Below are positions 15,577 through 62,618 of a DNA stretch of 64,000 bases, in pieces. Position numbers and translations under genes: made by a program. Source of the DNA: Raja brachyura. Taxonomy: Eukaryota. The DNA lies in contig OY740805.1 in assembly GCA_963514005.1 (NCBI GenBank), forward strand, positions 42,098,001 through 42,162,000, in the 5' to 3' direction. The notes under the pieces are model-generated. The model did not search any database and was not told where the DNA came from. It was given only the letters and a program-made list of their open reading frames with translations. Each line of letters starts with the position of its first letter. The first letter of the stretch is position 1.

Positions 15577-15835
15577 GGGGTCAGTTTGACCTGTATCATC
15601 CTCTTGACAGACTCTGCGGCGACTCCCAGACTCCACAATCGAATCTCCGCCACCTCCACCTCCCAATAATGTCTCCCCGATGTGAATCCCTCCAATCCCA
15701 GCACACACGGCCAGTGTGTAAACCTCTTCCTGGTGTCAGGGAGACTCCTCCGGGTCCCGGTCAGCCTCACCCTCTTCCGATCCTCAGACACCTCGAGCCG
15801 CGGACCCGCTGTTTCCACATCCAGGGTGACGGAGA
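15577..15835 (-). pseudogene. Truncated B30.2 (PRY-SPRY) exon, duplicated copy
   Basis: Acceptor cttctcccccag, [42 protein letters not shown]; the SPRY C-terminal half is missing and CR1 abuts the break. Confidence 0.88.
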
Positions 15836-16449
15836 CTGGGGGGAGAAGCAGAGAATCAGAGAGTTCCCGGGGGTCGGGGGGAGACTCGGGCAGCGCGGCC
15901 CCGGGACCGGGGGGAGAGGCCGCTCGGCCTCGGGCACAGGCGGGCGGACAACTGGACGATATCCCGGCTGTTTTCCAGCCCACCAACATCCCATGGACAA
16001 AAACATGTTCCCCGGAGTTTCCTAACTGTGGTGGAAGTGGAGGGGAACCGAGTTAACGGTGAGAAATAAAAACAAACAGCTGGAGGAAGTCCGCGGGTCA
16101 GGCAACACGTGTGTGAGGAAATGACAGAACACGTCTTGGGTCTGGACACTTCTTCATTCTCATGCTTCCCTCTGCTCCCTCCGTAGAAAGAGACAGGGGA
16201 AGGGGTGCAGCAAAATACTTTATTGTTTATCTATGAGTGTGTGTTAGAGTGTGAATGTGTGTTAGTGTGAGAGAGTGTGTGTGGGTGTATGAGTGTGAGT
16301 GAGTGTGAGTGTGCCTGTCTGTGTGTGTGTCACTGTGTGCGTGTTAGTGCGTGTTTTAGTGTATGTGTTAGTGTGTGCCTGTCTGTGTGTACATACACAC
16401 ACACGTACATATATTTACCGGGCAAATCTGGTAATGCTGGCTCAGTGTG

Positions 16450-17450
16450 TGTGGTATTGTGGATAGTGAAGATGGTTGTCAAAAATTGCAGCAGGATCTT
16501 GATCGGTTGGGCAGATGGGCTGAGGAATGGTTGATGGTATTTAATACAGGATTCAATACAAACTTAATGTAGGAGTGCAGTAACATAGTTCCTTGAAAGT
16601 GGCGTCACAGGTAGATAGTGTGCTCATAAAGCGTTTCAGCACATTGGCCTTCATCAGTCACAGTATTGAGTATAGAAGTTGGGAGGTCACGTTACGGATA
16701 TATAAGACGTTGGTGAAGCCACATTTGGAGAGTTGTGTTCAGTTCTGGGCACCATGTTATAGGAAATATGTTGTCAAGCTGTAAAGGGTACAGATAAGAT
16801 CTATGAGGATGTTGCCAGGACTCGAGGGCCTGAGCTATCGAGAGAGGATGAGCAGGCTAGGACTTTACTCCTCGTAGTGCAGGAGGATGAGGGGTGATCC
16901 TATAGAGGTGTACAGTATCGTGAGAGGAATAGATCGGGTAAACGCACAGAGTCTCGTCCCCAGAGTAGGGGAATTAACAATCATAGATTTAAATAAAGGG
17001 GGGGGGGGGGGAGTAGAGTTAACAGGAACCTGCGAGGGAACTCTTTTACACAAAGGGTGATGGGATTATGGAACGAGCTGTCGGAAGAGGTAGTTGAGGC
17101 AGAAGTGGATACAATTATGACAGGCATAGAACGCGTGGACAGTCAGAATCTTTTTCCCAGGGTGCAAATAATCAAAGACTCGAGGACATAGCTTTAAGGT
17201 GAGAGAGGCAAAGGTTAAAGGATTTGTGCGGGACAAGTGTTTTTCCCAGTGTGGGGAGCACCTGGAATGTGCTGCCAGGGTGGTGGTGGAGGCAGATACG
17301 ATAGTGGCATTTTAGATAGACACCTGGATATACAGGGAATGGAGGGATATGGATTATGTGCAGGCAGATAAGAGCTGGTCTTCGCACCATGTTCTGCACA
17401 GACATTGAGGGCCGAATGGCCTGTTCTTGTGCTGTCCTGTTCTACGTTAT
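16450..17450 (+). mobile_element. Old CR1 3' fragments (duplicated at about 22880-24070)
   Basis: CR1 RT C-terminal peptides (ORF 16593..16784 and 23240..23431). Confidence 0.8.
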
Positions 17451-17534
17451 GTTGAACGAATTCATGATCTGCGCTATAGCCGACATAACACACACCATAT
17501 GGTTTTATTGAATTGTACATCAGCCTGTACTTAC

Positions 17535-17561
17535 CATAATATCATTGCACATCCTCGTGCC
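17535..17561 (-). other. Putative 27-nt cytoplasmic micro-exon (duplicate of 24159-24185)
   Basis: tttgtgcag|27 nt|gtaagt; contains TGA in the phase-1 frame. Confidence 0.55.
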
Positions 17562-17699
17562 CTGCACAAAACAGAAATATTTCACATTTTCACTGCAACT
17601 AAAATTGGAAATAAAATAATGACAGCGGGAGCAAGAAACAAAGAGAGGGGGGCACAGTGACACAGCTCTTCACAGCTCCAGGGACCTGGGTTCAATCCT

Positions 17700-21049: not shown

Positions 21050-21582
21050 TTACTCACCCGGAACAGAACCGGAGCAGATTCTCATCCACTTGTCTTCATC
21101 CCAAGGCCAGAAGAAAGGATAAAGTTTCTCCGTGAATGTGTTCCCAGTGAAGGTGTGGAGATGGGACTTGGTGTCCGCGTCGTAAAATGCAACTGTCCCG
21201 GACTCGTAACTGAGATAAACTCCCACCCTCCCGGGGATGGGACGGGCGGGGAGAGGGGATGGAGGGGAGGTGAGTGCATCAAACCCGTCATCCCGCCGCC
21301 TGATGCTCCAGACTCCAGTCTTCGGCCTCAGTGTGACCCGTCCATTCCTCTCCACAGACTCTGCGGCGACTCCCAGCCTCCAGCGCCGACTCCCCGCCAC
21401 CTCCACCTCCCAGTAATGTCGCCCCGATGTGAATCCCTCCGATCCCAGCACACACGGCCAGTATGTAAACCTCTTCCCGGTGTCAGGGAGACTCCTCTCG
21501 GTCAGGGTCCGTCTCACCCTCTTCCGATCCTCAGACACCTGGAGCCGCGCATGCGCTGTTTCCACATCCAGGGTGACGGAGA
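21050..21582 (-). CDS. Intact terminal B30.2/PRY-SPRY exon (phase 1) of a butyrophilin-like gene
   Basis: Acceptor AG 21584-21583; open 177-codon frame [44 protein letters not shown] ending TAA at 21050; a TRIM origin is not excluded by the domain alone. Confidence 0.9.
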
Positions 21583-21671
21583 CTGGGGGGAGAAGCAGAG
21601 AATCACAGAGTCCCCGGGGGTCGGGGGGAGACTCGGGCACAGGCGGGCGGACAACTGACACCTTGCCCGGG

Positions 21672-22220
21672 GTTTGTCCAAATCTGAGGAAGGACATTAT
21701 TGCCATAGAGGGAGTGCAGCGAAGGTTCACCAGACTGATTCCTGGGATGTCAGGACTGTCTTATGAACAAAGACTGCATAGACTTGGTTTATACTCTCTA
21801 GAATTTAGGAGATTGAGAGGGGATCTTATAGAAACTTACAAGATTCTTAAGGGGTTGGACAGGCTAGATGCAGGAAGATTGTTCCCGATGTTGGGGAGGT
21901 CCAGGACAAGGGGTCACAGCTTAAGGATAAGGGGGAAATCCTTTAGGACCGAGATGAGAAGGAATTTTTTCACACAGAGAGTGGTGTGTCTCTGGAACTC
22001 TCTGCCACAGAGGGTAGTTGAGGCCAGTTCATTGGCTATATTTAAGAGGGAGTTAGATGTGGCCCTTGTGGCTAAGGGGATCAGAGGGTATGGAGAGAAG
22101 GCAGGTACGGGATACTGAGTTGGATGATCAGCCATGATCATATTGAATGGCGGTGCAGGCTCGAAGGGCCGAATGGCCTACTCCTGCACCTAATTTCTAT
22201 GTTTCTATGTTTCTATGTTT
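21672..22220 (+). mobile_element. Young CR1 3' end with (TTTCTATG)n tail
   Basis: ORF tail LGLYSLEFRRLRGDLIETYK; near identical to 50620-51150; absent from the duplicated intron at about 15960. Confidence 0.9.
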
Positions 22221-29755: not shown

Positions 29756-29989
29756 GTATCTGTATTCGCCACATTCTCTGATAGCATGATTCAGATAACA
29801 AAACCATTCCCTGTGTTAAAACATCACTCCTCAGATCCCTGCACGCATCGTCCTCTCACCTCATCACCTCATACCTTTGATACCTACCGCGGGAAATAAG
29901 ATGTTGACACTCTATCCTATCGTTGCCTCTCATAATCAGACAGTTTGGGCCGAATGGCCCGTTCCTCTGCTGTCTCCGAAATATCTTAC

Positions 29990-30016
29990 CTTCCATAGAG
30001 AGAAACAGCTGCAGTT
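29990..30016 (-). CDS. 27-nt phase 1-1 cytoplasmic micro-exon (ELQLFLSME) of BTN-like gene A
   Basis: cttgttttcag|aactgcagctgtttctctctatggaag|gtaaga; paralogue at 60098-60124. Confidence 0.78.
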
Positions 30017-30784
30017 CTGAAAACAAGAAGCAGGAACATGTCAGTGAGTGAGGCCGGCAGCACGTTCCACGCTGTGCACAAACAGAGCACAATTCACACG
30101 GTGCCCTCTGATTGAGACACTGCGCTAGGAGGTGGGGCACAAGGACCCCACATTCACCAGAGCCGGAGGAGACGGTGATGGAGACAAACTCCACCTGCAA
30201 CTGACCGCAAGGACACTGCGCACCGAGATTTCCTCCAAGAACCTTCCCCATGTGGCAAGGCTTGCTCTTCCTCCACCCTTTAGGCCGTGAATCCCACAGC
30301 CTTCACACGGGTTGTGTGAATGGGATTTTCCCACTTCCTTTCTGCACCATCTGCTGTGGCTCAGTGAGGTTTTCTCCTCTCGCCTCGGTCGCAATGTTGA
30401 GCTTCAGCAACTCGAGTCGTAACTCCAGCTGTCGCTGCGGTGCTGAGCCGAGGAAACCACCAGAGGAGCCTTCAGTTGGCCCAGTCGTAAACCTGTGGGT
30501 TTTGTCACACCAATGTGGAATATACAACAGTGCCATTAGGGCTCTCATGCTAATGTTTATACTTGATCAGACCTTTCTCAAACAACAGGGCCAGGTCGTT
30601 GCTCGGAGAGAGCTTGTGGTGATTACACCAACTTATCTCTTCTGACTTCATGAATGGCCATTGTACTTCAAAGGACACCTCAATGATTCAAGATAGACAC
30701 AAAATGCTGGAGTAACAGCGGGCAGGTAGCATCACTGGAGAGAAGGAATGGGTGAATTTCAGGTCCGAGAAACATAGACAAATA

Positions 30785-34512: not shown

Positions 34513-34632
34513 CTTTAATCATTTTATCTTCTTTTCTGTGTAACATTATATTGAAAGCAGCAGCCGTTACCACGAGGGCCACAAACGCCCAGAAAACCAG
34601 CAGCCAAGGGTTGGTTTTAGGAAATAACTCAT
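34513..34632 (-). CDS. Transmembrane exon (120 nt) of BTN-like gene A: DELFPKTNPWLLVFWAFVALVVTAAAFNIMLHRKEDKMIK
   Basis: atatag| and |gtgaga splice sites, phase 1-1, hydrophobic stretch followed by basic residues, directly downstream of the IgC exon. Confidence 0.85.
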
Positions 34633-34754
34633 CTATATTGGTGAATGAAAATAGATCAGTAACAGCAACAGGAAGGAACTACAGATGCTGGTTTGCGCAG
34701 TGAAAGTTAGTTCAGAACTCGCTTTTGTAGAATGTTTCCCAGGTTCCCACGTAC

Positions 34755-35039
34755 CTGATATCTGGAGATGGGCCTCTCGTGTTTTCCCCGTTGACCTACT
34801 TCGTATGAAACAGGAATACCTGTTCACAGAATCACTTGTGACATCGATGTGACTGTGGACAGTGATCAGCCCGCTGGTGTCCTCAGTGAACAGTGTGTCA
34901 GACCGTGCTGTTACATCTTGTCCACTCCCATCCAGCCACCGTATCACCGGCTTGGGAAACCATCCATTCGACTTACACACCACACGCACTCCTTGCGTGG
35001 TGCTTTCCTCCAAGCGGATCCAGGGCCGGAGGCCAAATC
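34755..35039 (-). CDS. IgC exon (285 nt) of BTN-like gene A
   Basis: ttgcag| GFGLRPWI..VVCKSNGWFPKPVIRW..YSCFIR..LQIS |gtacgt; BTN/B7 C-domain motif C.S.GWFP.P..W. Confidence 0.92.
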
Positions 35040-35046
35040 CTGCAAT

Positions 35047-35794
35047 GAATGAATGGATGAATGAATACATTTATTGGCCAAGTATTCACATACAAGGAAT
35101 TTGCCTAGGTGCTCCGCCCACAAGTGACAACATGCCATACAGTGACAGTTTGGAATGACACATAAAACATTAAACATTAATAATAACACATTATCATAAA
35201 CATGTGCATTAAATAAAATACCAGAGCAAAAGGAGGCTACAGATTTTTGGTTATTGAGTAGAGCTACTACTCATGGAAAAAAGCTGTTTTTATGTCTGGC
35301 TGTTGTAGCTTTGGCAGTCGCCTTCCAGAGGGAAGTGAATCAAAGAGTTTGTTGCCAGGGTGAGAGGCATCAGAGATGATCTTACCCGCTCGTTTCCTGG
35401 CCCTTGCAGTTTACAGTTCATCAACGGAGGGAAGGTTGCAGCCAACTACCTTCTCAGCTGATCGGACAATTCGCTGCGGCCTCCGGATGTCGGGCTCAGT
35501 GGCTGAGCCAAACTAGAACGTGATGGAGAAGGTGAGGACCATCATAGAATTGGACCATCATTGCCTGTTGCAGATTGGCCTTCCACAGCTACCGCATGAA
35601 GTACATCCTCTTTTGGGCCTTTTTGACTGTCGCGTCGATGATGGCCCCCCCATTTAGGGCCCTTGGAGATGATGGTTCCCAGGAATTTAAAGGACTCCAC
35701 AGATGTGACTGTGGTGTTGTTGATGGTGAGTGGTGTGAGGGGAGGGGGAGCTCTCCTAAAGTCTACATTTAATTCCACCGTCTTAAGAGCATTG
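35047..35794 (-). mobile_element. Rex1/Babar-like LINE, 3' half with (ATTC)n tail
   Basis: ELNVDFRR..VESFKFLGTIIS; continues the RT half at 37095-37569. Confidence 0.85.
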
Positions 35795-36118
35795 TTTAAT
35801 TAGTGGGAAAGGAAAGTCTACAAGAATATGTGGCTATTGAACTGCAGAGGCTAGTTTGTACCGAAGGCAGACACAAAATGCTGGAACAACTCACTGGGTC
35901 AGGCAGAGGGATAGGTGATGTTTCCGGTCGAAAATATATGCAGCAGCTTTCGTTATGCATTATTGAATCTTTCATTGAAAGACTAAGAGCAAAGTATCCA
36001 GACCAATATCATTTCGAAGAGTTCCAAACTATAACAAAATAATCACATTTGCTTTCTTTAAATCGCCAGCAGGAAAGATTCTACAAATATTCTGAAGCTT
36101 AACCATTGTATTTTCTAG

Positions 36119-36466
36119 AGGAGTTCGCTGTGATTGTGCCGGACTATCTAGTGGTGGCCATGGTGGGTGAAGATGCCGTGTTGGAATGTCAGAAGGTACC
36201 GGATACATCACTGGACGCTCTGGAGGTCCGATGGTTTACAACGAGCCCGGGGTCACCGGTACATTTGTACACCGGCGGCCAGGACCGAGCTGAGGTGCAG
36301 GACGGGGCTTACCGAGGGAGGACGGAGCTTATTCGGGAAGAGTTTCCCCGTGGAAACGCATCGCTTAAACTGAAGAGGGTCAAAGTATCAGATGCTGGAA
36401 TGTACACGTGTTCCATCAGCACCCCCACGTCCAGTCACCAGGCGGCGCTGCGGCTGCAGGTTGAAG
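36119..36466 (+). CDS. IgV exon (348 nt, open frame) of BTN-like gene A, inverted relative to the rest of the gene
   Basis: ttttctag| EFAVIVP..VGEDAVLEC..LEVRW..VHLY..YRGRTEL..GNASLKL..V.VSDAGMYTC..LQVE |gtgagt, phase 1-1. Confidence 0.93.
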
Positions 36467-37094
36467 GTGAGTCCCTATGGAGGCATAGAGTTCACACCAG
36501 GGTTTACACCGGGAATGTCAGTAAGCTGCCCCCCAGACTGGGATTTTACTGGGAAGGTCAAGGGTTACTGACAATGTTGACCGCTGCCTCGGCACAGGCT
36601 GGGAGTGACACGGCCTGGAACGGAATGGCAGCGGCGAGGTTGTGTGTAGGAAGGAACTGCAGATGCAGGTTTACACCGAATGTAGACATAAAATGCAGGA
36701 GTAACTCCGCGGGACAGGCAGCATGTGTGGAGAGCAGGAATGGGTGACGTTTCGGGTCGAGACCCATCTGAAGACTGAGAATCATGGGAGAGGGAGTCTA
36801 GAGATATGGAAGGGTAAGGTGGGAAAAAGATGAATCAAAGGGGACGCGGTTCAAGTAAAATGTAGAACAGATCATTGTTAGCTGAAGGGGAAGGTGACAA
36901 CGAGGCGATGGGGCGGTAACGCAGCGGTACCCGGTCACCCAACCAATGATCGTTGGAGTTCCCACCGCTGCTCTTTCTGTGGCTCTTCAGGCCCCGGCGT
37001 CATCTGCTGCTCACTGACCCAGCACACGGAAAGCCCTTTCCATGCCGAGATACATGTGTAACTATCGTGTTTACCGATTACATTCCGATTGCAG

Positions 37095-37569
37095 TTTGAA
37101 CATCGGGCCAATAGATCTGTGGATGACGCAGTCAACCTAGTCCTGCACTTCATCCTCCAGCACCTAGACTGCCAGGGGACCTATGCGAGGATTTTGTTTG
37201 TGGATTTTAGCTGTGCATTCAACACCATTGTGCCAGAGCTACAAACTCTCCAAATTGACTGTGCCTGAACCCCTCCGTCAGTGGATCACCAGCTTCGTGA
37301 CAGACAGGAAGCAGCATGTGAGGCTGGAAAAGCACATTTCAGCCCCGCAGACCCTCAGCATAGGAGCACCTCAAGGCTGTGTACTCTCGCCTCTCCTCGA
37401 TTCTCTCCACACCAATGACTGCACCTCCACAGATTCCCCTGTCAAGCTTCTCAAGTTTGCGGACGACACAACCCTGATTGGACTCATCCAGGATGGGGAG
37501 GAATCTGCCTACAGACAGGAAGTGGCACAGCTGGTGTCCTGGTGCCTTCGTAACAACTTGGAGCTCAAT
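37095..37569 (+). mobile_element. Rex1/Babar-like LINE, RT half (inside the inversion)
   Basis: GAPQGCVLSPLL, KFADDTTLIGLI, NNLELN. Confidence 0.88.
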
Positions 37570-37676
37570 AGGTCATGGGTACACAGAACACTCTGCCTTC
37601 ACTTTGTTGTACACTTTGATCCAGCTTCTGAACCCCCACACACCCCCCCTCCCCCCACACCCCCAGAATTTTTGAA

Positions 37677-38898
37677 GAGGTTACTAGGGAAATTGATGAG
37701 GGTAAAGCAGTGGATGTTGTCTATATGGATTTCAGTAAGGCCTTTGACAAGGTTCCCCGTGGAAGGTTGGTTAAGAAGGTTCAATCTTTTGGTGTTAATG
37801 GCGGAGCAGCAAGATGGATTCAACAGTGGCTGAATGGGAGATGCCAGAGAGTAATGGTGGATGGCTGTTTGTCAGGGAGGAAGCCGGTGACCAGTGGGGT
37901 GCCTCAGGGATCTGTGTTGGGTCCACTGTTGTTTGTCATGTGCATCAATGATCTAGATGATGGGGTGGAAAATTGGATAAGTAAGTATGCAGATGATACT
38001 AAGATAGGTGGTGCTGTGGATAATGAAGTAGATTTTCAAAGTTTACAAAGAGATTTGGGCCATTTGGAAGAGTGGGCTGAAAGATGGCAGATGGAGTTTA
38101 ATGCTGATAAGTGTGAAGTGCTACATCTTGGCATGACAAATCAAAATAGGAAATACATGGTAAATGGTAGGGAATTGAGGAATGCTGTGGAACAGAGGGA
38201 TCTAGGAATAACTGTGCACAGTTCCCTGAAGGTGGAATCGCATGCAGATAGGGTGGTAAAGAAATCTTTTGGTGTGCTGGCCTTTATAACTCAGAGCATT
38301 GAATATAGGAGTAGGGAAGTGATGTTAAAATTGTACAAGGCATTGGTAAGACCAATTCTGGAGTATGGTGTACAATTTTGGTCGCCTAATTATAGGAAGG
38401 ATGTCAACAAAATAGGGCGAGTACAGAGGAGATTTACTAGAATGTTGCCTGGGTTCCAGCAACTAAGTTACAGAGAAAGGTTGAACAAGTTAGGTCTTTA
38501 TTCTTTGGAGCGCAGAAGGTTAAGGGGGGTCTTGATTGAGGTCTTTAAAATGATGAAAGGGATAGACAGAGTTGACGTGGATAAGCTTTTCCCATTGAGG
38601 GTAGGGAAGATTCAAACAAGAGGGAATGACATGAGAATTAAGGAACAGAAGTTTAGGGGTAACATGAGGGGGAACTTCTTTACTCAGAGAGTGGAATGAT
38701 CTTCCAGCAGAAGTGGTGGAGGTAGGATCGATTTTAACATTTAAAAGTAAATTGGATAGGTATATGGACGGGAAGGGAATGGAGGCGTATGGTCTGAGTG
38801 CAGGTGGATGGGACTAGGGGAAAATAAATGGTGGGCACGGACTGAAAGGGCAGAGAAGTCCTGTTTCCGTGCTGTAATTGTTGTATGGTTATATGCTT
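37677..38898 (+). mobile_element. CR1 RT 3' portion
   Basis: ORF 37710..38699 with [10 protein letters not shown] and YADD; gttatatg tail. Confidence 0.93.
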
Positions 38899-39016
38899 AT
38901 AGTCCAAATCCTGCAATCTGGATGTAATCGGTGAAAACAATTGTTACATGTGTATCTTGACATGGAAAGGGCTTTCCGTGTGCCGGGTCAGTGAGCAGCA
39001 GAGGACGCCGGGGCCC
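38899..39016 (-). pseudogene. Intron end, acceptor and about 12-nt stub of the IgC exon of BTN-like gene B
   Basis: gattgcag|gatttggacta matches 62608-62720 and 37000-37094. Confidence 0.75.
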
Positions 39017-39699
39017 AGGGCCGGATTTAGATGAAGAGAGGCCCTAGGCTGTTCCACTTGTGAGGCCCCTCCCAATCCCCCACCCCCACGACTAGAGGAA
39101 GATGGTCCACCAGATTGGCACCGATTTGCAGCCGAGCATTTGCAATGAGATGAGGGGCAGGAAAGCTGTGCTTTATTTATTTATTTATTGCCAGTGCTAG
39201 TGTCGAGTTATCGGCTTAAAAGAATATTATTCTGAAATGGAGGACAATGAAAATTACTGAAGCGTTGTTTAGAAACTACAGTGCATTGTGACAGCATATG
39301 TAAGAAAGGCCTGTGACAGTGTCAAAAATATTATACAACTTGCAGGGCTCTCACTTTTTTTCCCTGTTGTCAGCCGGGCAACCTTGGCAGCTTTTTAAGT
39401 TGCCAAATGACAGTTTAGGTGGTCATTTCAGACGGCTTGCATGCAATAATGCGCTCGGAGAAAGTGCGTAGTTACTAGTCGGAATTATGCTCAATGAAGC
39501 ATTCACATATTATTTCTGCTTCAAATAAAGTCACAAACTAAACATATTCAGCAATCAAGACATGATATATACCACAATGGCATGCAGCAAAATTATAATA
39601 CAGTATCTCAACTCTTTTTACACTTTGCAATTAATGCAATTTCTAATATTTCTTTCCATTTCCAAACAAAATTGTGGTTGGATTATTCAGTGGATGATC

Positions 39700-40105
39700 A
39701 ACCTCAGTGAGACGAAGCGTAGGCTTGGCGATCGCTTCACACAACACCTCCACCCAGTTCGCAATAACCAACCTGATCTCCCGGTGGCTCAGCACTTCAA
39801 CTCCCCCTCCCATTCAGAATCCGACTTTTCTGTCCTGGGCCTCTTCCATGGCCAGAGTGAGGCCCAGCGTAAATTGAGGAGCAGCACCTGATATTTCGCT
39901 TGGGCAGTTTACACCCCAGCGGTATGAACATTGACTTCTTCAATTTCAGGTAATCCCTGCTTTCGCCTCCCCTTCCCAGCTCTCCCACAGCCCACTGTTT
40001 CTGCCTCTTCCTTTCTTCTTCCCGCCCCCCCCCCCACCCTCACATCAGTTCGAAGAAGGGTCTCGACCCAAAACGTCGCCTATTTTCTTCGCTCCATAGA
40101 TGCTG
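39700..40105 (+). mobile_element. Older Penelope GIY-YIG/3' fragment
   Basis: ETKRRLGDRF..NNQPDLPVAQHFNS; decayed hammerhead at 40050-40077. Confidence 0.85.
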
Positions 40106-41059
40106 AAATAAAATGAAATGCTACCTTTATTGTCGTTCGGACCGAAAGGTCTGAACAAAATTTCGTGCTGCCTCACCTGCTGTGTTTGTCCTGCATTTCT
40201 TTCTACCCATTCACACAAGTTCTATTATCCCACTTTCCTCACCAACTCCCTACACATTAGGGGCAATTTCACACAGACAAGTTAACCTAGAAAGCCAGTG
40301 CATCTTTGGGATGTGGGAGGAAACCCACACGCTTGCAGGGAGAATGTGCAAATTCAACACAGACAGTGCCCGAGGACAGGATCGAACACAGATCTCTGGC
40401 GTGTGAGGCAGTACGTCTACCAGCTGTGCCACTATATTTTGTTTTGCAACACAAAAAGTTATACGTTGATAACTTTGGTTACTAAAACAATTAAAATATC
40501 AATTTTCAGTCTTATATCTCCAAGTGATGCTATGTCCCCCTTTACAGCTACTGTATGTTTTAATTAAGTTCAAGACTATGGGGCAGTATATTGGCCATAA
40601 AGTTGCTGCCTAAAAGTGCCAGAGACCCGGAATTGATCCAGAATATGGGTGCTGTCTGTACGGAGTTTGCTCCTTTTCCCTTTGATCGCATGGGTTTTCT
40701 CCGGGTGCTCTTGTTTCCTTCCACATTCCAAAGTTGTGCAGGAATCTTTCAGACCCAACCCAATAAGTAATATTTTCCTTTTGTCCAGAGAATCTGTCTG
40801 ACCTGTTGAGTTACTCCAGCTGTTTGTGACTATCTTCAGTTTTGTGTCTATGACAACATCTGCAGTTCCTTCCTACACACACAATACTATACGAGAGAAC
40901 TTTATTAATCCCAGGAGGGAAATTCTGTGCATGTGTCTATATATATTACACACACACATAAAAAGAAATGCACATATTTATATATATTCATATATAAATA
41001 TACAGAGTTTTGTTTTCTCATTTATAACATTGTTTACAGAGTACTATGTTTACATATTT

Positions 41060-41480
41060 ACATACTCGCTGGAATTTAGAAGATTGAGGGGGGATCTTAT
41101 AGAAACTTACAAAATTCTTAAGGGGTTGGACAAGCTAGATGCTGGAAGATTGTTCCCGATGTTCGAGGAGTCCAGAACAAGGGGTCACAGTCTAAGGATA
41201 AGGGGGAATTCCTTTAAGACCGAGATGAGGAAAACATTCTTTACACAGAGAGTGGCGAGTCTCTGGAATTCTCTGCCACAGAAGGGCCAGTTCATTGGCT
41301 ATATTTAAGAGGGCGTTAGATGTGGCACTTGTGGCTGAAGGGATCAGGGGGTATGGAGAGAAGGCAGGTACGGGATACGGAGTGGGATCATCAGCCATGA
41401 TCACATTGAATGGCAGTGCAGGCTCGAAGGGCCGAATGGCCTACTCTTGCACCTATTTTTCTATATGTTCTATGTTCTCT
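41060..41480 (+). mobile_element. CR1 3' fragment
   Basis: YSLEFRRLRGDLIETYK..RTRGHSL. Confidence 0.85.
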
Positions 41481-42227
41481 GTTCCTGTTGTGCTGCTTCA
41501 AGTAAGGATTTCATTGTTTTAACTGGGACGTGAGAGAATAAAACACTCTTGACTCTCGACTTATTGTGTGGGATAGAACTAGTGTATGGGTGATCGGTGG
41601 TCGGCGTGGACTCGGTGGGCCGAAGGGCTTGTTTCCATGCTGTATCTTTAAATTAAACTAAAGACACTAAACCCAGAGGGAGTCTAAAGAAGGGCCTCAA
41701 CACGAAACGTCACACAATTTCGTCTATGCAGAGTTGCTGACTGCTCCATGGAGATTCCCCGCACAATTAAAGCATGGAATAGTCTTCACCCTACCATAGG
41801 TACCCAACCAGGTGCAACTAAATTTAAGGTACCTCGTTTTATCCCAAGAACCCTTTTTTGCTTAAGTCCAAGGCAAGAGTCAAGAGAGTTTTATTGTCAT
41901 GTGTCCCAGAGAGGACAATGACATTCTTGCTTGTTGCAGCACAACAGAATATGTAAACATAATACAGAACAGGAGATAAAAGTGTGTTTATATACCATTG
42001 ACCATATATACACTCAATAAATAAACAGATAAAATGCAATAGGCTGTTATTGTTCAGCCCCCCACCACCTCCAGTTTAAATTCCATTTGGAATAATTATG
42101 GAGGACCAGGAAACCAGAAGCAAGTTACTCCAGGGAGTTACTCCAGATCTAGGGTCAGGGAGTGATTCTGAGTTGGTTTTCAGCGGTCGCGGCGAGGCGG
42201 CGACCGGACAGCAATGGCGGCCAGATC

Positions 42228-43905
42228 ATAGAAAATAGGTGCAGGAGCTGGCCATTCGGCCCTTCGAGCCTGCACCGCCATTCAATATGATCATGGCTGA
42301 TCATCCAACTCCGTATCCTGTACCTGCCTTCTGTTACCCCCTGATCCCTTTAGACACAAGGGCCACATCTAACTCCCTCTTAAATATAGCCAACAAACTG
42401 GCCTCAACTACATTCTATGGCAGAGAATTCCACAGATTCACCACTCTCTGTGTGAAAAATGATTTTCTCATCTCGGTCCTAAAAGACTTCCCTCTTATCC
42501 TTAAACTGTGACGCCTTGTTCTGGACTTCCCCAACATTGGGAACAATCTTCCTGCATCTTGCCTGTCCAACCCCTTAAGAATTTTGTAAGTCTCTATAAG
42601 ATTCTCCCTCAATCTTCCAAATACCAGCGAGTACAAGACGAGTCTATCCAGTCTTTCTTCATATGGAATTCCTGCCATCCCAGGAATCAGTCTGGTGAAC
42701 ATTCTCTGTACACCCTCTATGGCAAGAATCTATTTGCTCAGATCAGGAGATCCTGTACAACTGCAGTAGAACTACCCTGGTCTTGTACTCAAATCCTTTT
42801 GCTATGAATGCCAACATACAATTCTCCCATTTTCCTAATCGGTCACCATTCAGATAATAGTCTACCCTTCTGTTTTTGCCACCAAAGTGGATAACCTCAC
42901 AATTATCCACATTAAACTGCATCTGCCATGCACTTGCCCACTCACCCAACCTATCCAAGTCACCTTGCAGCCTCCTAGCATCCTCCTCGCAGCTAACACA
43001 GCGCCCCAGCTTCGTGTCATCTGCAAATTTGGAGATGTTGAATTCAATTCCCTCATCCAGATCATTAATATATATTGTAAATAGCTGGGGTCCCGACACT
43101 GAGCCTTGCGGTACCCCACTCGTCACTGCCTGCCATTCTGAAAATGACCCATTTACTCCTGCTCTTTGCTTCCTGTCTGCTAGCCAGTTCTCTATCCACA
43201 TCAATACTGAACCCTCAATACCGTGTGCTTAAAGTTTGTATACTAATCTCTTATGTGGGACCTTGTTGAAAGCCTTCTGAAAGTCCAGATATAACACATC
43301 CACAGGTTCTCCCTTATCCACTCTACTAGTTACATCCTCAAAAAAGTCTATAAGATTCGTCAGACATGAATTACCTTTCATAAATCCATGCTGACTTTGT
43401 CCAATGATTTCACCACTTTCCAAATGCGCTGCTATCCCATCTTTAATAACTGACTCTAGCATTTTCCCCACTACCGATGTTAGAGTAACTGGTCTGTAAT
43501 TCCCCGTTTTCTCTCTCTCCCTCACTGTTTAAAAAGTGGGATTACATCAGCTACCCTCCAATCCTCAGGAACTACTCCAGAATCTAAAGAGTTTTGAAAA
43601 TTTATGACTAATACATCTGCTATTTCTGGGGCTACTTCCTTAAGTACTCTGGGATGCAGCCTATCTGGCCCTGGGGATTTATCGGCCTTTAATCCATTCA
43701 ATTTACCTAACACCATTTCCCGGCTAACCTGGATTTCACTCAGTTCCTTCATCTCATTTGACCCCCGGTCCCCTGCTATTTCCGACAGATTACTTATGTC
43801 TTCCTTAGTGAAGACATAATCAAAGTAGTTATTCAATTTGTCTGCCATGTCCTTGTTCCCCATGATCAATTCACCTGTTTCTGACTGCAAGGGACCTATA
43901 TTTAT
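42228..43905 (-). mobile_element. CR1 ORF2 (RT) fragment in the IgV-IgC intron of gene B
   Basis: ORFs 42415..42702, 42743..43204, 43229..43525, 43522..43917. Confidence 0.9.
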
Positions 43906-44026
43906 CCCACAATTCAAAGCAAGGGAGAAACTTGACCTTCCCAGTAAAATCCCAGTCTGGGGGGCAGCTTACTGACATTCCCGGCGTAAACCCTGGTGTG
44001 AACTCTATGCCTCCAGAGGAACTCAC

Positions 44027-44375
44027 CTTCAACCTGCAGCCGCAGCGCCGCCTGGTGACTGGACGTGGGGGTGCTGATGGAACACGTGTACATTCCAGCA
44101 TCTGATACTTTGACCCTCTTCAGTTTAAGCGATGCATTTCCACGGGGAAATTCTTCCCGAATAAGCTCCGTCCTCCCTCGGTAAGCCCCGTCCTGCACCT
44201 CAGGTCGGTCCTGGCCGCCGGTGTATAAATGTACCGGTGACCCCGGGCTCGTTGTAAACCATCGGACCTCCAGAGCGTCCAGTGATGTATCCGGTACCTT
44301 CTGACATTCCAACACGGCATCTCCACCCAACCATGGCCACCACCGGATAGTCTGGCACAATCACAGCGAACTCCT
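44027..44375 (-). pseudogene. IgV exon of BTN-like gene B (349 nt, +1 frameshift near 44330)
   Basis: Near identical to 36119-36466 with intact splice sites; atggttgggtgg versus atggtgggtga. Confidence 0.9.
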
Positions 44376-44829
44376 CTAGAAAATACAATGGTTAAGTTTC
44401 AGAATATTTGTCGAATCTTTCCTGCTGGCGATTTAAAGAAAGCAATTGTGATTCTTTTGTTATATTTTGGAACTCTTCCAAATATCATTGGTCTGGATAC
44501 ATTGCTCATATGAAAGATTCAATGCATAATAAAAGCTGCTGCATATATTTTCGACCGGAAACATCACCTATTCTTCTGCCTGACCCAGTGAGTTGTTCCA
44601 GCATTTTGTGTCTGCCTTCGGTATAAACTAGCCTCTGCAGTTCAATAGCCACATATTCTCGTTGTCTTTCCTTTCCCACTAATTACACAGGTCAGGGGTA
44701 CACAGAACACTCTGCCTTCACTCTCCCGCACACCAAGGAATCCAGCAAGTTGAAAAATGTCCTTTAAAGAAACAAAGCTGCTGCCCTTCCCCAGTCTGTG
44801 ATCCATGTAACTCCCAGACACGCAGCAAT

Positions 44830-46645: not shown

Positions 46646-47169
46646 GCAGCAATGTTGTACACTTTGATCCAGAATCTGAAATGCCTCCCGTGATCATCAG
46701 TGTGATGAGAGGTTTAAATATTTAAGATAGAAATGGTGAATTGTGAGGCAAGCAGACTCTTCCCAGCTTTAAGTGCTGGAACTGTGGTGATAATGACAGG
46801 GAAAGAACCCCGTGGATGGTGGAAATCTGAAACGGGAAATGCCAGCTAGTGTGTGAATGGCAAGTACAGGCCTGATGTGTCCACTCTGCAGAAACACACG
46901 CCACATGGAGCTGTGTAGTAGAGGCTGCTGAATGCCATGGAAACAGACAGTATAATAATGTAAATAGACCATTCATGGGGAGAGCAGATTGGGAGAGGTG
47001 GGAAGATGCTTGGTGCGTCTGTTCAATTGGAAATGGCCAGCACATAATTAGAGTCATAGAGTGATACTGTGTGGAAATGGGTCATTCGGCCCAACTTGCC
47101 CACACCGGCCAACATTTCCCAGCTGTACTAGTCCCACCTGCCCGCCTTTGGTCCATATCCCTCCAAACA

Positions 47170-47853
47170 TGTCCTGTCCATGTACCACACCTGTCCTATC
47201 CATGTGACACACCTGTCCTATCCATGTGACACACCTGTCCTATCCATGTGACACACCTGTCCTATCCATGTGACACACCTGTCCTATCCATGTACCACAC
47301 CTGTCCTATCCATGTACCACACCTGTCCTATCCATGACACACCTGTCCTATCCATGACACACACCTGTCCTATCCATGTACCACACCTGTCCTATCCATG
47401 TACCACACCTGTCCTATCCATGTACCACACCTGTCCCATCCATGTACCACACCTGTCCCATCCATGTACCACACCTGTCCCATCCATGTACCACACCCGT
47501 CCCATCCATGTAAAACACCCGTCCTATCCATGTACCACACCTGTCCCATCCATGTAACACACCTGTCCCATCCATGTACCACACTTGGCCTATCCATGTA
47601 CCACACCTGGCCTATCCATGTAACACACCTGTCCCATCCGTGTAACACACCTGTCCCATCCGTGTACCACACCTGTGCTATCCGTGTACCACACCTGTCC
47701 CATCCATGTACCACACCTGTCCTATCCATGTACCACACCTGGCGTATCCATGTACCACACCTGTCCTATCCATGTACCACACCTGTCCTATCCATGTACC
47801 ACACCTGTCCTATCCATGTACCACACCTGTCCTATCCATGTACCACACCTGTC
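47170..47853. repeat. 22-bp minisatellite (cacctgtcctatccatgtacca) of about 31 copies, resuming at 51150-51200
   Basis: Head-to-tail units with no spacers. Confidence 0.95.
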
Positions 47854-55558: not shown

Positions 55559-55559
55559 A

Positions 55560-57370: not shown

Positions 57371-57994
57371 AGAGCTGTAGGCAGCGGTGCAAGCATTCAA
57401 GGCAATCAGAATGATGCAGGACGGCATTGGTGGAATGAAAGGACGCAAAGTGATCGATCATCCTCCTGCACGCCAAGGAATGAAGTCGGAGCCTGCCCAA
57501 CCTCGCCCTATAGCACAACCCCTCAAATGCTGCCAGCATTCTGCTAAAATAAACCGTATTGAATAAGTCAATGTATCTGCTTACTCTTCCTGGAATGATC
57601 TTGTACAACAACATTTCTAATTCATCCTTCTCCAGGAGTGAGGTATACATGAGGTTTTACACTGGTGGTGATTTTAGCTTGAAAACGCGGGTTCAGGACA
57701 GGCACCAATGGTTCTGAGCTCCTGCCCAGCCTTCCCAGTTCAGGGAACAGAGTGAAGAATGGAAGCAGAAGGATAGCGGGTCCGGAACTCGGGCTTTTGT
57801 TTTGATTTGGGCCGATATTATTTATTTTATTTACTGAACGTATTTGTTTGTGTCTGAAGTTATCTATTGAATATTGTTTTCACAGATTGTTTTGCTGCTG
57901 CCAGTGAGAATGTAATTATTAATTATTATGTAAATAATTTGCTTTGAAGAAGGGCTCGAGCCCGCAACCAGAGATCCTGCCTTTTCTCAAGGTC

Positions 57995-58234
57995 CTCTCC
58001 ACAGACTCTGCGGCGACTCCCAGCCACCAGCCCCGACTCCCCGTCATCTCCACCTCCCAGTAATGTCTCCCCGATGTGAATCCGTCTGATCCCAGGAGAG
58101 AAGACCAGTATCTAAACTTGTTCCCCGGTGTCAGGGAGTCCCCTCTCGGTCCCGATATTTCTCACCCTCTTCCCATCCTCAGACACCTCGAGCCGCGAAT
58201 GCGCTGTTTCCACATCCAGGGTCACCCCTGGAGA
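57995..58234 (-). pseudogene. Truncated, frameshifted B30.2 exon of BTN-like gene C
   Basis: VTLDVETAHSRLEVSEDGK, extra G near 58125, then [24 protein letters not shown], then the homology ends. Confidence 0.85.
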
Positions 58235-59248
58235 CTGGGGAGAGAACCAGAGAATCAGAGAGTCGCCGGGTGTCGGGGCGAGACGCCTGCAGCGCGCGCG
58301 GCCCCGGGACTGAGAGAGGTCCGAGTGGGATTGAAGGACAGAGTGAGGAGCAGGTGGATCCGGGGAATGGGGAAAGCTGGGGGGGGGGGGGGGCATGGGA
58401 CGTGTCAAGGGCAGGAGGGCGAGCTGCTGGGAAGAGCAATTGGTGCTGAGCAGAGTGAGAACGGGGTGCGTCGACCCGTGCGGCAAGGGTGAGAAGGGAC
58501 AGTACAAATGGGCAGGGGAGCGTCACTTTAGAGATACAGCATAAAACAGGCCCTTCGGCCCACCGAGTCCGCACCGACCAACGATCACCCCGTACACTAA
58601 CAGTACCTTACAACGTGGGACAATTTACAGTAGACAATTGATCCTCAAATTAAAAAATCATCTTTGTAGTGTGGGAGGGAACCAGGACACCTGGAGATAA
58701 CCAACGCGGTCACGAGGAGAATGTAAAACTCCGCACCGGCAGTACCCATATTCAGGATGGAACCCGTTCTCTGGCGCTGTGAGGCAGCAGCTCTACCCTC
58801 TGCTCCACTGTGGCGCCCGAAATGGCAGTGGTGGGTTGAGCGGCAGAGGACACGGCAGGTGGGTTGATGATGGGGAAGAGCGTTGTGGGTAGGATTGGGG
58901 AGACGATGCTGCGGGGGAGAAATGGGATAACTGGAGATTGAGAAGAAAGAGGGGCAACGATGGGAAGTAAAAGAGCGCGAGGCACGGGGGCGAGCAAGTT
59001 GGGTGGGTGGCGGAGTGGAGGAAAGGTGGTAGGAAGTGAGAGAGGTAGCGGTGGAGACGAAAGTGACAGTGCAAGCGTGAGCAAGAGGGATAAAGAGGAG
59101 AGCAACGTCACTGTACCGAGGTACATGTGACAATAACGCTTCATCGAATGGGTCACAAAACATTAAAGGCAGAATGGGATGGCTCTGTGAGCCGGAATAG
59201 AATGTGAAATAGTACAAAGTATTGGGATGCAAAATTATCTGTACATAC

Positions 59249-59275: not shown

Positions 59276-60097
59276 TTGCATAAAAACAGAAATACTACAC
59301 TTCAAAACTTTCATTGTTTGCTGATGGATGATTCAAAGTAGAAATGAAAATGTCCACAAGATAGGTTACAATCCACAATAACAGCACAGATCAAATGGTC
59401 TATTCATCTCGAACCATCCAGCCGAACATCTTGAAGCAAGCTGGGCGGAGGTCGCAGAGAGAGAGCTCTTCCTGACGCCCAGACTGTAATCAGTAAGGAC
59501 AGGCAACAGAGCATTTTCCATGACAATTCTCAACGTTGTTGTTTCTCAAGGCTGCATCCTCAGCCCCTTTTAATACCGCCTGAGACTCATGATTTCCCGA
59601 TGTTAAAATAAGGGAACTGCAAAAAGGCAAGAAGAATTTGTCCCAAGTAAACCATAATCTGGGTGTATATTTGCAGATTTCACTGAAACACAGTTGGCTT
59701 TTCATGTAGGTTTCTTCCAAATTGTATTCAGACATTCACAGCATAGAATAATTATTTATCCAATTCTGTTAGAGATAAATTAATAAGAACTTTTTTTAAA
59801 ATTTCGTTCACTAAGGGATTCCAAGACATAAAATGAATAAACACAGTCCATCCAACTGCGGTCTGAAAGGTGAGAAGGATGGAAAAACCAGAGACTTGGT
59901 GGCGAGTGGATTAGAAGAGGAAGATAGAACGATGCAGCACAGGAACAGGCTCTTTGGCCCACAATGTCTGTGCCGAACATGGCACTAGGATTAGTGGAAC
60001 ATGGACCACGGAGACAGGAGAAGGGCTGTGAAACGACATTGAACATTTCTCAGTCAGTCGATATAAATTGTAGTCGCAAGTCATCGAAATATCTTAC

Positions 60098-60124
60098 CTT
60101 CCAAAGTGCAAAACAGCTGGAGTT
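60098..60124 (-). CDS. 27-nt micro-exon (ELQLFCTLE) of gene C
   Basis: attttcag|27 nt|gtaaga, paralogue of 29990-30016. Confidence 0.75.
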
Positions 60125-60637
60125 CTGAAAATAAGAACACGTCCCAGGACCGTGTCAGTCACTGCGCACAGACAGAGCACAGCGGTGCTCTCTGGATTCA
60201 GACACTGTTGACAGTAAACGAGTGCACCATCTAAACTACTTGCCGAACATGCCCATGGATCTGCAGACTTTCAACACCCTTTGGGTTGAAGTAATTTCCC
60301 CAGATCACCTCTAATCCTCCTGCCCAAAACCTTCAACCTATTGCCCCTAGTTATTGGTCTGACAGTTCATGGAACTACATCCTTCCCAATGGCTCTATCC
60401 CATTATTCCATACGCCAGGGCATCTTCCCTTGGCGGCTTCACCCATCACCCTCGATGAGAAAACATTGCCCCTAAGGTTTGTATTAAATCTTTCCCTGCT
60501 CACCGTAAACTGATGCCTTCTAATTCGTGATTCACTGCCCATGGTAAAATACTCTGTGCACTCACCTTATCTATTCCCTTCATGAATGTGTACATCTCTA
60601 TAAGATCACCCGCTCATTCCCCAGCGCCCCTTCTCAC

Positions 60638-60763
60638 CTTGAATCTTTTTGTCTTCGTATCTGTGGATCATTATATTGAAAGCAGCAGTGACCACAAGGC
60701 CGGCAAACACTCAGAATATCGGCACGCAGATGTTGAACTCGTTAACTTTATTGACGAACAGAT
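60638..60763 (-). pseudogene. TM exon of gene C (126 nt) with in-frame TGA
   Basis: ttctag| NLFVNKVNEFNICVPIF*VFAGLVVTAAFNIMIHRYEDKKIQ |gtgaga; stop at 60711-60713 aligns with Trp of gene A. Confidence 0.8.
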
Positions 60764-62333
60764 CTAGAAGGGAAATGCGTACACTCGTATCAGATGTCCC
60801 AGCGCTTGAGATCCGGAGCTACAGCGAGATATTCGGCCGGTTGACTTAATTCCTTGGAGAGCAGGAGGCTGAAGGGTGATCTTATAGAGGTGTGCTAAAC
60901 CATGACGTGAATAGAGAGGGTGAGTGCACAATCTTTTACCCAGTATAATCAAGAATTAGAGGGCGCAGGCTTAAGGTGAGGGGGGCAAGATTTAATGCAA
61001 ATCTCAGGGGCAACGTTTTCACACAAAGGGTGATGGGAATATGGAACCAGCTGCCAGAGGAGGTAGTTGAGGCAGGTACTATAATATCATTAAAAATACA
61101 ATTGGATAGGGATGCGGATAGGAAAGGTTTGGAGGTAGTTTGAGTTTATATTTTACCAGTAGCATTTTGTCTGGCAAGCCAGTTTCAGAACCCTTTCTCT
61201 GGTGAAATGTGCGCCGATCTGGGAAGCGCCCTCGACCGCTATCCCCGCCAACGGGTGTCACGGGGACAGAGGTTTATAATGATAAAGGTCGATCTTCTCA
61301 TTAAGCAGGGCCATGGTTGGGAATGGTTCGTATCACTTCACAGGCTGGCCGTCTAGTGAGTGATGTGTCCAAGTAACTCGCACAAGAACCAACTCACACA
61401 AATAGCGTGTTTACTGAGATCTCAGCCGCTGCTATGAACCGACATGAAACACGGGGCATCCATATCATAAAATAATGTGTAGATTTCATCTTCAGTAATG
61501 TCACAGCACAGCAGCAAACTTCCGGTTCCGATCTCGCCCCTGTCACGGGCATTTGAATAAGTTGATGGAGATGACTGATGTTTGTGGGGGTGGTGGGGGG
61601 TGGGGGGGGGGGGGGGGGGGGTGAGGGGGGGGGGTCTTTTATTCTGAACCAGCATCTGCAATTCCTTGTTTCCTCATTGGGACCGTATGGAAAGGCATTG
61701 AACTTGCTCCCACTAAGACAGGAGGAGCGGGAGGTGGAACTGAATCTATCAGCTATCCCAACGCACTAGTAGTCTCCTCCCAGCGGCAACGAGTCAATAA
61801 CCCCATCTCCCCATCCACTGCATCAACAACCAGCCCCAGCTGCCCATCACTTGCCGAATGTTAGGGTTCATTCCTGAGGTATCCCACACCTAATCTGTTA
61901 TAGACCCTGTGTGTAGGAGGGAACCGCAGATGCAGGTGAACACCGCAGATAGACACAAAATGCGGGAGTAACTCGGCGGGTCAGGCAGCATCTCAGGAGA
62001 GAAGGGACGGGTGACCTTTCGGGTCGAGGCCCTTCTTCAGACTGAGAGTCGGGTGAAGGGAGACTAGAGATATAGAAGGGTAAAGTGTGAAAACGACAGA
62101 TCAAAGCAGACGTTGAACAAGGAAATGTAGAATGGTTCATTGTTAGCGGAGGGGATGGTGACAATGAGGCATACAATCAGCAAAATTATTCAGGACGGTG
62201 AAACTTGTCGAAGAACTAGGGTGTGGCGGTACAGAGAGAGGGAACGGTTACTGAGTTTACTGAGTGTATGCCTCCTGCATTTCCGTGTGCCAACTTCTCT
62301 CTTTTATAGATGGTTATCCAGGTTCCCACATAC

Positions 62334-62618
62334 TTGATATCTGGAGATGGGCCTCTCGTGTTTCGCCCAGTCTTTTATTTCGTATGTAACAGGAATACCT
62401 GTTCACAGAATCACTTGTTACATCGATGTGACTGTGGACAGTGATCAGCCCGCTGGAGTCCTCAGTGAACAGTGTGTCAGACCGTGCTGTCACACCTTGT
62501 CCACTCCCATCCAGCCACCGCATCTCCGGCTTGGGAAACCATCCATCCGATTTACACACCACACCCACTCCTTGCGTGGTGCTTTCCTCCAAGCGGATCC
62601 GGGGCCGTAGTCTAAATC
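62334..62618 (-). CDS. IgC exon (285 nt, open) of BTN-like gene C; its IgV exon is expected beyond the window end
   Basis: gattgcag|GFRLRPRI..CKSDGWFPKPEMRW..YSCYIR..LQIS|gtatgt; 81/95 aa identical to gene A IgC. Confidence 0.92.

Follow-up and report, generated by a model that had tools for sequence, protein, structure and literature searches.

The 64-kb stretch of DNA analysed here (the window) contains three or four paralogous exon sets and no complete colinear gene. IgV exons of 348 or 349 nt, IgC exons of 285 nt, TM exons of 120 or 126 nt and micro-exons of 27 nt are followed by a terminal PRY-SPRY (B30.2) exon. Direct reading of the sequence revealed that every exon is flanked by an AG acceptor and a GT donor, in phase 1. 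The original prediction had placed phase 1 exons of these types with GT-AG sites in the window, and they are real; the boundaries that it drew, at 15577, 21050, 36466, 38899, 44375, 57995 and 62618, all fall on real features. Its statement that all of the exons lie on the minus strand is incorrect, as the 348-nt IgV exon of gene A is on the plus strand.

Exon content of the window

The downstream exons of gene A are as follows.

34755..35039, minus strand: IgC exon, 285 nt, open; C2-set_3 9.2e-19; top single-domain PDB matches BTN2A1 and BTN1A1
34513..34632, minus strand: TM exon, 120 nt, open; hydrophobic stretch of 22 residues; aligns with P0042 (Mustelus BTN1A1-like) in its TM region
29990..30016, minus strand: micro-exon, 27 nt, ELQLFLSME, with AG/GT sites, phase 1
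21050..21582, minus strand: terminal B30.2 (PRY-SPRY) exon, phase 1, open, with stop codon TAA at 21052-21050

The B30.2 exon of gene A is the only intact one in the window. It lies downstream of the 27-nt exon on the same strand and is phase-compatible with it. This exon matched PRY at 3.9e-20 and SPRY at 1.1e-21, and its best PDB matches were BTN2A2 and BTN3A (3e-43 and below; BTN2A2 3e-43), ahead of TRIM21. That all four downstream exons remain open is compatible with a gene A that works in some haplotypes at least. Direct reading of the two arms of the inverted repeat described below revealed no leader (signal peptide) exon, and short tblastn searches with 14 homologous leaders returned only noise.

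The second exon set, gene C, and an additional B30.2 exon comprise the following features.

62334..62618, minus strand: gene C IgC exon, 285 nt, open; C2-set_3 up to 3e-20 among the two IgC exons
60638..60763, minus strand: gene C TM exon, 126 nt, interrupted by an in-frame TGA at 60713-60711
60098..60124, minus strand: gene C micro-exon, 27 nt, ELQLFCTLE, the same peptide as in P0042 (Mustelus BTN1A1-like)
57993..58234, minus strand: gene C B30.2 remnant, with frameshifting insertions of 4 nt and 1 nt; homology is lost at 57993
15577..15835, minus strand: orphan B30.2 exon, with acceptor and PRY retained and SPRY truncated where the 3' end of a LINE begins

The IgV exon of gene C was absent from 63100-64000, indicating that it lies beyond the end of the window. 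The orphan B30.2 exon is 5.2 kb downstream of that of gene A, and both it and gene C would be pseudogene remnants. The micro-exon regions of genes A and C are homologous (29977-30029 and 60085-60137, 88.7%). The predicted 27-nt micro-exons exist in both genes. Only one was found in each, giving a juxtamembrane segment of ~18 residues. A minus-strand scan for AG-N(21-33)-GT yielded a single convincing micro-exon, the known one of gene A, with the limit that its pyrimidine filter missed the 27-nt exon of gene C, which is known from direct reading.

Judged by Pfam, PDB ranking and elasmobranch homologues, these exons belong to the butyrophilin (BTN/BTNL) group, and the predicted BTN/BTNL architecture of IgV-IgC-TM-short exon-B30.2 was borne out by the same comparisons. 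All similarity searches were run exon by exon, and V-set, C2-set_3, PRY and SPRY matched far above cut-off. The IgV exon matched V-set at 6e-13, and its PDB matches were MOG (72.9 bits), BTNL8 (70.2) and BTNL3 (68.5), above VTCN1, CD276 (per domain) and PD-L1. Among the profiles proposed for the locus, V-set, PRY and SPRY fitted, whereas C2-set_2, the CD80-type model, was weak on the IgC exons (about 1e-4). These fit PF22705 C2-set_3, the BTN3A2-like Ig-C model, instead (9.2e-19 and 3e-20; 67.7 versus 23.1 bits). CD276 appeared as a top match as an artefact of two summed domains; per domain, BTN2A1 and BTN1A1 were the best matches of IgC.

Family members elsewhere encode type I membrane proteins with an IgV-IgC ectodomain, a single span, a short juxtamembrane segment derived from the 27-nt exon and, on the cytoplasmic side, PRY-SPRY (B30.2); by analogy the products would be cell-surface immune regulators. 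The control of gamma-delta T cells invoked in the original prediction stands as an analogy only; we know of no functional tie of butyrophilins to these cells shown in any cartilaginous fish. We also considered a BTN3A1-like phosphoantigen sensor and rejected it. H351 is the key phosphoantigen residue of BTN3A1 (PMC7348870), and aligning the window sequence with BTN3A3 chains (R351, or H351 in the variant) puts Trp at this position ('RFEW[H/R]YCVLG' versus 'RFTYWPCVLG').

The inverted IgV block and "gene B"

Upstream of the gene A IgC exon lies an inverted repeat with an IgV exon in each arm.

35047..35792, no strand assigned: repetitive insert from the gene A IgC acceptor to the left arm; an (ATTC)n tail abuts the acceptor; very high contig depth in 4/4 runs
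35793..37094, plus strand: left arm, with upstream flank, intact IgV exon and IgV-IgC intron up to the IgC acceptor AG
36119-36466, plus strand: intact IgV exon, 348 nt, open, within the left arm
37095..38899, plus strand: spacer between the arms, holding a plus-strand LINE fragment with homology to other copies from 38004; reverse transcriptase ORF 37710-38699, RVT_1 5.9e-24
38900..44689, minus strand: right arm ("gene B"), with frameshifted IgV, intron with LINE insertions, acceptor, the first 12 nt of IgC and then a break
44375-44027, minus strand: right-arm IgV exon, 349 nt; an extra T at 44330/44329 shifts the frame

The arms align at 35793-36562 and 44689-43931 with 94.3% identity over 771 nt. 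Their IgV exons are 97.4% identical and the flanks about 92%, and each arm carries different transposon insertions. The 3' end of the spacer LINE meets the end of the right arm at 38899/38900. The intron upstream of the gene C IgC exon, 62619-62875, matches 37094-36837 in reverse, and the region 37094-36742 was matched in reverse orientation only. Gene B had been described as an exon set spanning 38899-44375. What lies there is the frameshifted IgV exon and 12 nt of IgC, with no micro-exon. Searches with the window exons and with full-length shark and ray templates turned up no further IgC, TM or B30.2 exon for gene B.

The acceptor motif 'ATTGCAG' is present at 3/3 junctions. The IgV exon and IgV-IgC intron of gene A lie inverted just upstream of its IgC exon. 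A second, correctly oriented copy of IgV plus intron lies 9 kb upstream, frameshifted and ending 12 nt into IgC against a LINE. Each of the three junctions is no more than about 12 nt away from the IgC acceptor, which suggests that a single event, either an inversion or a fold-back duplication, rearranged this site, where retroelements are present at both junctions. The window supplies a concrete example of such a rearrangement, in which an IgV block was turned around at the IgC acceptor between retroelements.

As assembled, the window yields no complete IgV-IgC-TM-B30.2 protein. Colinear exons on a single strand that give one open reading frame were absent from it: the intact IgV exon is on the plus strand, the minus-strand IgV exon is frameshifted, and gene C carries a nonsense codon and frameshifts. 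These lesions were read from one assembly, in which a 1-nt indel, a single TGA or an inversion could be an assembly error or confined to one haplotype. We therefore weighed whether gene A is in reality an intact, working IgV-IgC-TM-B30.2 butyrophilin and the inverted IgV block or upstream frameshift an assembly or haplotype artefact. Its IgC, TM, 27-nt and B30.2 exons are all open with canonical splice sites, inverting 35047-37094 restores exact colinearity with gene C, and the two arms resemble each other more closely in the IgV exon than in its flanks. However, a 5.7% difference between arms that bear different transposon insertions is not that of a trivial fold-back artefact, the recurrence of the acceptor motif at every junction needs more than a mis-oriented contig, and the leader exon is missing. 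On this evidence we regard an intact gene A as unlikely.

Also in favour of an intact gene A, near-identical IgV, IgC and TM exons occur in spliced form in public runs. In a 526-nt contig of run X2, 35038-34755 is joined directly to 34632-34513, corresponding to a spliced IgC-TM junction exactly at the predicted borders, which it confirms. The contig is about 97% identical to the window and so cannot be tied to this locus. The same four differences from the window in the TM exon were found in 4/4 runs, and the contigs may stem from an allele, a paralogue or a sister species. Contigs of run X1 end exactly at exon borders, whereas DNA-like runs cross them. Of the junctions along IgV, IgC, TM, short exon and B30.2, IgC-TM alone was seen, in this one contig, among assembled contigs of the four public runs. 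These contigs do not reach across the inversion junction, and 35039-35075 was skipped as repeat.

The original prediction held that at least three paralogues, A, B and C, each separate and potentially functional on the minus strand, lie here with a spare B30.2 exon. The exon-type sequences do recur three or four times where predicted, and this part of the claim stands. The genes do not: what is present is an inverted IgV, an IgV stub, a broken gene C and a lone B30.2 exon. Gene B consists of a frameshifted IgV only, gene C is broken by a nonsense codon and two frameshifts and its B30.2 is cut short, and the IgV exon of gene A is on the opposite strand. Three working paralogues are contradicted by the sequence as assembled and would need all five lesions to be errors, which we consider extremely improbable. 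The window is instead probably a transposon-rich piece of a BTN/BTNL-type cluster in a skate- or ray-type genome, in which decay and rearrangement prevail over intact genes. The locus is a mostly pseudogenic fragment of an already known family, and the proposed birth and death within the array is supported.

B30.2 exons and TRIM39-like genes

The nearest B30.2 sequences (80-85% identity) are annotated as TRIM39-like or zinc-binding protein A33-like in skates and rays. In a tree, the window B30.2 sits amid skate TRIM-type rows within a well-supported elasmobranch clade. BTN-type and TRIM39-type B30.2 domains of elasmobranchs are intermingled in this tree.

Both the annotation of the closest matches and the position in the tree would fit B30.2 exons that belong to TRIM39-like genes with RING, B-box and coiled-coil parts outside the window, leaving the Ig and TM exons to a B7-like protein that lacks B30.2. 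The TRIM39-like and A33-like models carry RING, B-box or coiled-coil parts, whereas the window offers Ig and TM exons in their place. When 150 B30.2-family proteins, TRIM-type included, were searched by tblastn against the 64 kb, no RING or B-box exon emerged, and everything matched was an Ig, TM or B30.2 exon or a piece of a transposon. In addition, the strand and phase of the gene A B30.2 exon suit the 27-nt exon above it, P0024 and P0042 combine exactly these parts, and the interleaving of the two architectures makes closeness to TRIM-type rows uninformative on linkage. That these exons belong to TRIM39-like genes is accordingly very doubtful, and we retain the assignment to a butyrophilin cluster.

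It is conceivable, albeit on balance doubtful, that the elasmobranch B30.2 exon is a module repeatedly exchanged or homogenised between BTN-like and TRIM39-like genes of the same cluster. If so, tandem spare B30.2 exons, such as the pair behind gene A, would be raw material for this process, and butyrophilins and TRIM cytoplasmic sensors would co-evolve as a single pool in each lineage.

Comparison with butyrophilins in other vertebrates

The closest protein matches come from Rhinoraja, Amblyraja, Leucoraja, Pristis, Hemitrygon, Mobula and Mustelus, and the prediction of a cartilaginous-fish-type genome agrees with these skates, rays and Mustelus. Full-length homologues with V-set, C2-set_3, PRY and SPRY include Pristis 'BTN3A3-like' P0024 and Mustelus 'BTN1A1-like' P0042. 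P0042 matches the IgV, IgC, TM, micro-exon and B30.2 exons, and those of gene A are colinear on the minus strand save for the plus-strand IgV. No protein at least 90% identical to the locus was present in a collection of 5.8 billion proteins; the best match was 85%, and the window locus itself therefore appears unannotated in that collection.

The description of the cluster as hidden, or novel, is weak. NCBI (Gnomon) has already annotated butyrophilin-like genes ('butyrophilin subfamily 1 member A1-like / 3 member A3-like') in many elasmobranchs, and butyrophilins have been reported in all jawed vertebrates, four chondrichthyans included (Marenco et al. 2026, PMC12841164). Most of the chondrichthyan butyrophilins lie on the chromosome that carries MHC class I, and lineage-specific duplications occur (Marenco et al. 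2026, PMC12841164); within the window there are no MHC genes. The locus opens no new question: that cartilaginous fish have butyrophilins, that these are linked to the MHC and that they expanded within lineages is already published and annotated. Its contribution is a closely read batoid case of birth and death among butyrophilins, together with a caution for annotation, as in this cluster predictors could easily build a spurious complete gene by using an IgV that is inverted or frameshifted, or by drawing on adjacent B30.2 exons.

Among elasmobranch relatives, the Ig exons of Mustelus P0042 are 60-67% identical to those of the window and the peptide of its 27-nt exon is identical, and the B30.2 of Pristis P0024 is 77-79% identical. 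The window locus differs from the annotated elasmobranch models in being a degraded member.

Mammalian BTN1A1, BTN2A1/2, BTN3A1-3 and BTNL3/8 share the domain order and exon plan (348-nt IgV, 285-nt IgC, TM, heptad exon and one terminal B30.2, here all phase 1); the general butyrophilin exon plan has been described (PMC6790196). In PDB sequence comparisons, mammalian butyrophilins also rank first for B30.2 and, domain by domain, for IgC, with BTNL8 and BTNL3 second to MOG for IgV, and their clusters expand and decay as here. They differ in having several short exons rather than one of 27 nt, and the window copies are broken or rearranged. Chicken BG genes, MOG and B7-H3 (CD276) have a related B7/BTN-type IgV; however, MOG and the BG genes lack the combination of IgC and B30.2, and CD276 lacks B30.2.

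Butyrophilin-type exons among retroelements

To locate every butyrophilin-type piece, we searched the window by tblastn, using as queries both the Ig and B30.2 ORFs it contains and full-length homologues from sharks and rays; the exon anatomy was read directly from the sequence in three frames. All exons have an AG acceptor, a GT donor and phase 1. The exons, under the original names for the three butyrophilin-like (BTN/BTNL) sets (genes A, B and C), are as follows, with tblastn matches in brackets.

36119-36466, plus: gene A IgV exon, 348 nt, intact, within an inverted repeat (36106-36561, plus)
35039-34755, minus: gene A IgC exon, 285 nt, open (34636-35070, minus)
34632-34513, minus: gene A TM exon, 120 nt, with a hydrophobic run of 22 residues
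30016-29990, minus: gene A micro-exon, 27 nt, ELQLFLSME
21582-21050, minus: gene A B30.2 exon, open, TAA at its end (21053-21730, minus, complete)
15835-15577, minus: extra B30.2 exon, truncated, acceptor and PRY part kept (15573-15893, minus, partial)
44375-44027, minus: gene B IgV copy, 349 nt (43932-44388, minus)
62618-62334, minus: gene C IgC exon, 285 nt, open (62293-62625, minus)
60763-60638, minus: gene C TM exon, 126 nt, TGA in frame at 60713-60711 in this single assembly
60124-60098, minus: gene C micro-exon, ELQLFCTLE
58234-57993, minus: gene C B30.2 remnant, homology ending at 57993, with 4-nt and 1-nt insertions in this single assembly (57941-58264, minus, degraded)

The three-frame reading bore out the exon sizes and boundary coordinates of the original prediction, which had described at least three minus-strand BTN/BTNL paralogues across 15577-62618. 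However, the exons are not all on the minus strand, since the intact gene A IgV exon lies on the plus strand. Nor are the sets intact as had been supposed: the gene B IgV is frameshifted, gene C carries its TGA and insertions, and the extra B30.2 exon is truncated. The window as assembled holds no complete IgV-IgC-TM-B30.2 reading frame, with lesions known from one assembly, and the number of genes was overstated.

The window contains no N and is densely filled with retroelements, among them LINE ORFs with endonuclease and reverse transcriptase. A Ty3/gypsy-type LTR retrotransposon gag-pol ORF (7187-11344, minus; 1385 aa) is unbroken and has RVT_1, RNase H, and integrase zinc-binding and core domains; this copy looks young and maybe still coding. 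ORFs with a conserved '...YIGETKRRL.DRF.EHLRSVRNNQPDLPVA.HFNSPSHS...' block recur at 2444-3190, 4981-6337 and 45729-46133 (minus) and at 39562-39891 (plus), and we take the block to resemble the GIY-YIG endonuclease end of Penelope-like elements; two of these ORFs had no Pfam match. A minisatellite at 47163-47854 (22-nt unit, 31.5 copies, 93% matches) gives rise to spurious long ORFs on both strands and in several frames.

For family assignment, single exons were used as queries against Pfam, PDB and protein collections. Pfam identified V-set, C2-set_3, PRY and SPRY, with IgC scoring 67.7-72.5 bits for C2-set_3 ('BTN3A2-like Ig-C') versus 21-23 bits for CD80-type C2-set_2. By sequence, the best PDB matches of IgV were MOG, BTNL8 and BTNL3, above which 4-Ig CD276 ranked solely through the summing of two of its domains. 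The best per-domain matches of IgC were BTN2A1 and BTN1A1, and B30.2 ranked BTN2A2 and BTN3A1/3 (~1e-43 to 1e-39) ahead of TRIM21 (~1e-37). Among 1.84 billion representatives, the B30.2 ORF matched elasmobranch proteins at 66-83% identity, including a Pristis 'butyrophilin subfamily 3 member A3-like' and Mustelus and Carcharodon 'BTN1A1-like' proteins, with V-set, C2-set_3, PRY and SPRY domains. The gene C micro-exon peptide ELQLFCTLE is identical in a Mustelus BTN1A1-like protein. Collectively, the Pfam, PDB and elasmobranch homologue matches support assigning the exons to the butyrophilin family, broadly defined, as originally proposed.

A proposed rearrangement at the IgC acceptor

The gene A IgV exon and its intron sequence lie in the left arm of an inverted repeat, of which gene B is the right arm. 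The segment 35793-36562 (plus) matches 44689-43931 (minus) with 94.3% identity over 771 nt, and a second stretch pairs 36990-37094 with 39015-38911. In gene B, the IgV frame is shifted after ~15 codons by an extra T at 44330/44329 (in this single assembly) and LINE insertions break up the intron. Its homology extends past the acceptor into the first 12 nt of IgC and stops at 38900, abutting a LINE on the plus strand whose 3' end lies there, in the spacer between the arms (37095-38899). The gene C intron upstream of IgC (62619-63211) matches 37094-36742 in reverse orientation only. Gene A IgC shares just ATTGCAG with the gene C intron side; the sequence upstream of this is a repetitive insert that has an (ATTC)n tail. 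The tail (35040-35075, minus) leads straight up to the gene A IgC acceptor, whose pyrimidine tract it forms.

If 35047-37094, which comprises the repetitive insert and the left arm, were flipped, gene A would again be colinear from IgV through the intron to IgC, and three of three junctions fall within ~12 nt of the IgC acceptor. We propose that a single event, an inversion or else a fold-back duplication, rearranged the locus at this acceptor; both junctions have retroelements. The two arms share 94% identity and genes A and C 87-91%, so the rearrangement would be younger than the split between the two genes. The earlier interpretation of an array undergoing birth and death stands.

Spliced contigs in public sequencing runs

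We compared the window with contigs assembled from four public runs (X1, X2, X13 and X17), none of which is recorded as RNA. A 526-nt contig from X2 joins 35038-34755 directly to 34632-34513, a splice at exactly the predicted IgC and TM borders, and carries 47 nt and 75 nt more that are unplaced. In X1, one contig spans exactly the TM exon, and the end of another coincides precisely with the IgV donor (36466). Contigs from the DNA-like runs X13 and X17 run across those exon borders. The contigs confirm the exon model at the level of the family. They differ from the window by ~3%, and the TM exon has the same four substitutions relative to the window (34541, 34552, 34568 and 34581) in all four runs, DNA-like and RNA-like; the window TM allele was seen in none of the four. 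Because of these differences, the contigs are not assignable to the window locus.

B30.2 exons and known butyrophilins

Behind gene A are two tandem B30.2 exons (21050-21582 and 15577-15835, minus), 5.2 kb apart; the second loses homology around 15577, at the point where a LINE on the plus strand begins with its 3' end. The nearest B30.2 proteins come from skates (Rhinoraja, Amblyraja and Leucoraja; 80-85% identity), followed by stingray, manta and sawfish (69-79%), with no match at 90% identity or above in the protein collection searched. A BTN3A1-type phosphoantigen sensor is not supported, with Trp found at the H351 position.

The majority of the nearest matches are annotated as TRIM39-like or A33-like. 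The tblastn survey found no further Ig, RING, B-box or B30.2 exons in the 64-kb window. A maximum-likelihood tree built from 56 B30.2 domains puts the window B30.2 within a starred (99) elasmobranch clade in which Ig-attached and RING/B-box-attached domains interleave and group by taxon, although some gene models from clusters of this kind may have been joined wrongly. Forcing the seven BTN-attached rows together, a group named after the tree was seen, cost 73.6 log-likelihood units (AU p = 6.6e-5), and a single group of BTN-attached elasmobranch B30.2 domains is rejected. Given this interleaving, likeness to TRIM rows is therefore no argument against a BTN gene. The pattern would fit exchange or homogenisation of B30.2 exons, or mis-joined gene models, and raises the hypothesis that B30.2 exons have been exchanged recurrently.

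The array is a fragment, pseudogenic for the most part, of a family that is already known and annotated, and its novelty had been overstated. For mammals, a plan that runs from IgV and IgC through TM and heptad exons to B30.2 is textbook (PMC6790196). Butyrophilins have been described in all jawed vertebrates, the chondrichthyans Hemiscyllium, Carcharodon, Hypanus and Callorhinchus among them; most sit on the chromosome that carries MHC class I, and they are duplicated by lineage (Marenco, Olive and Pontarotti 2026, PMC12841164).
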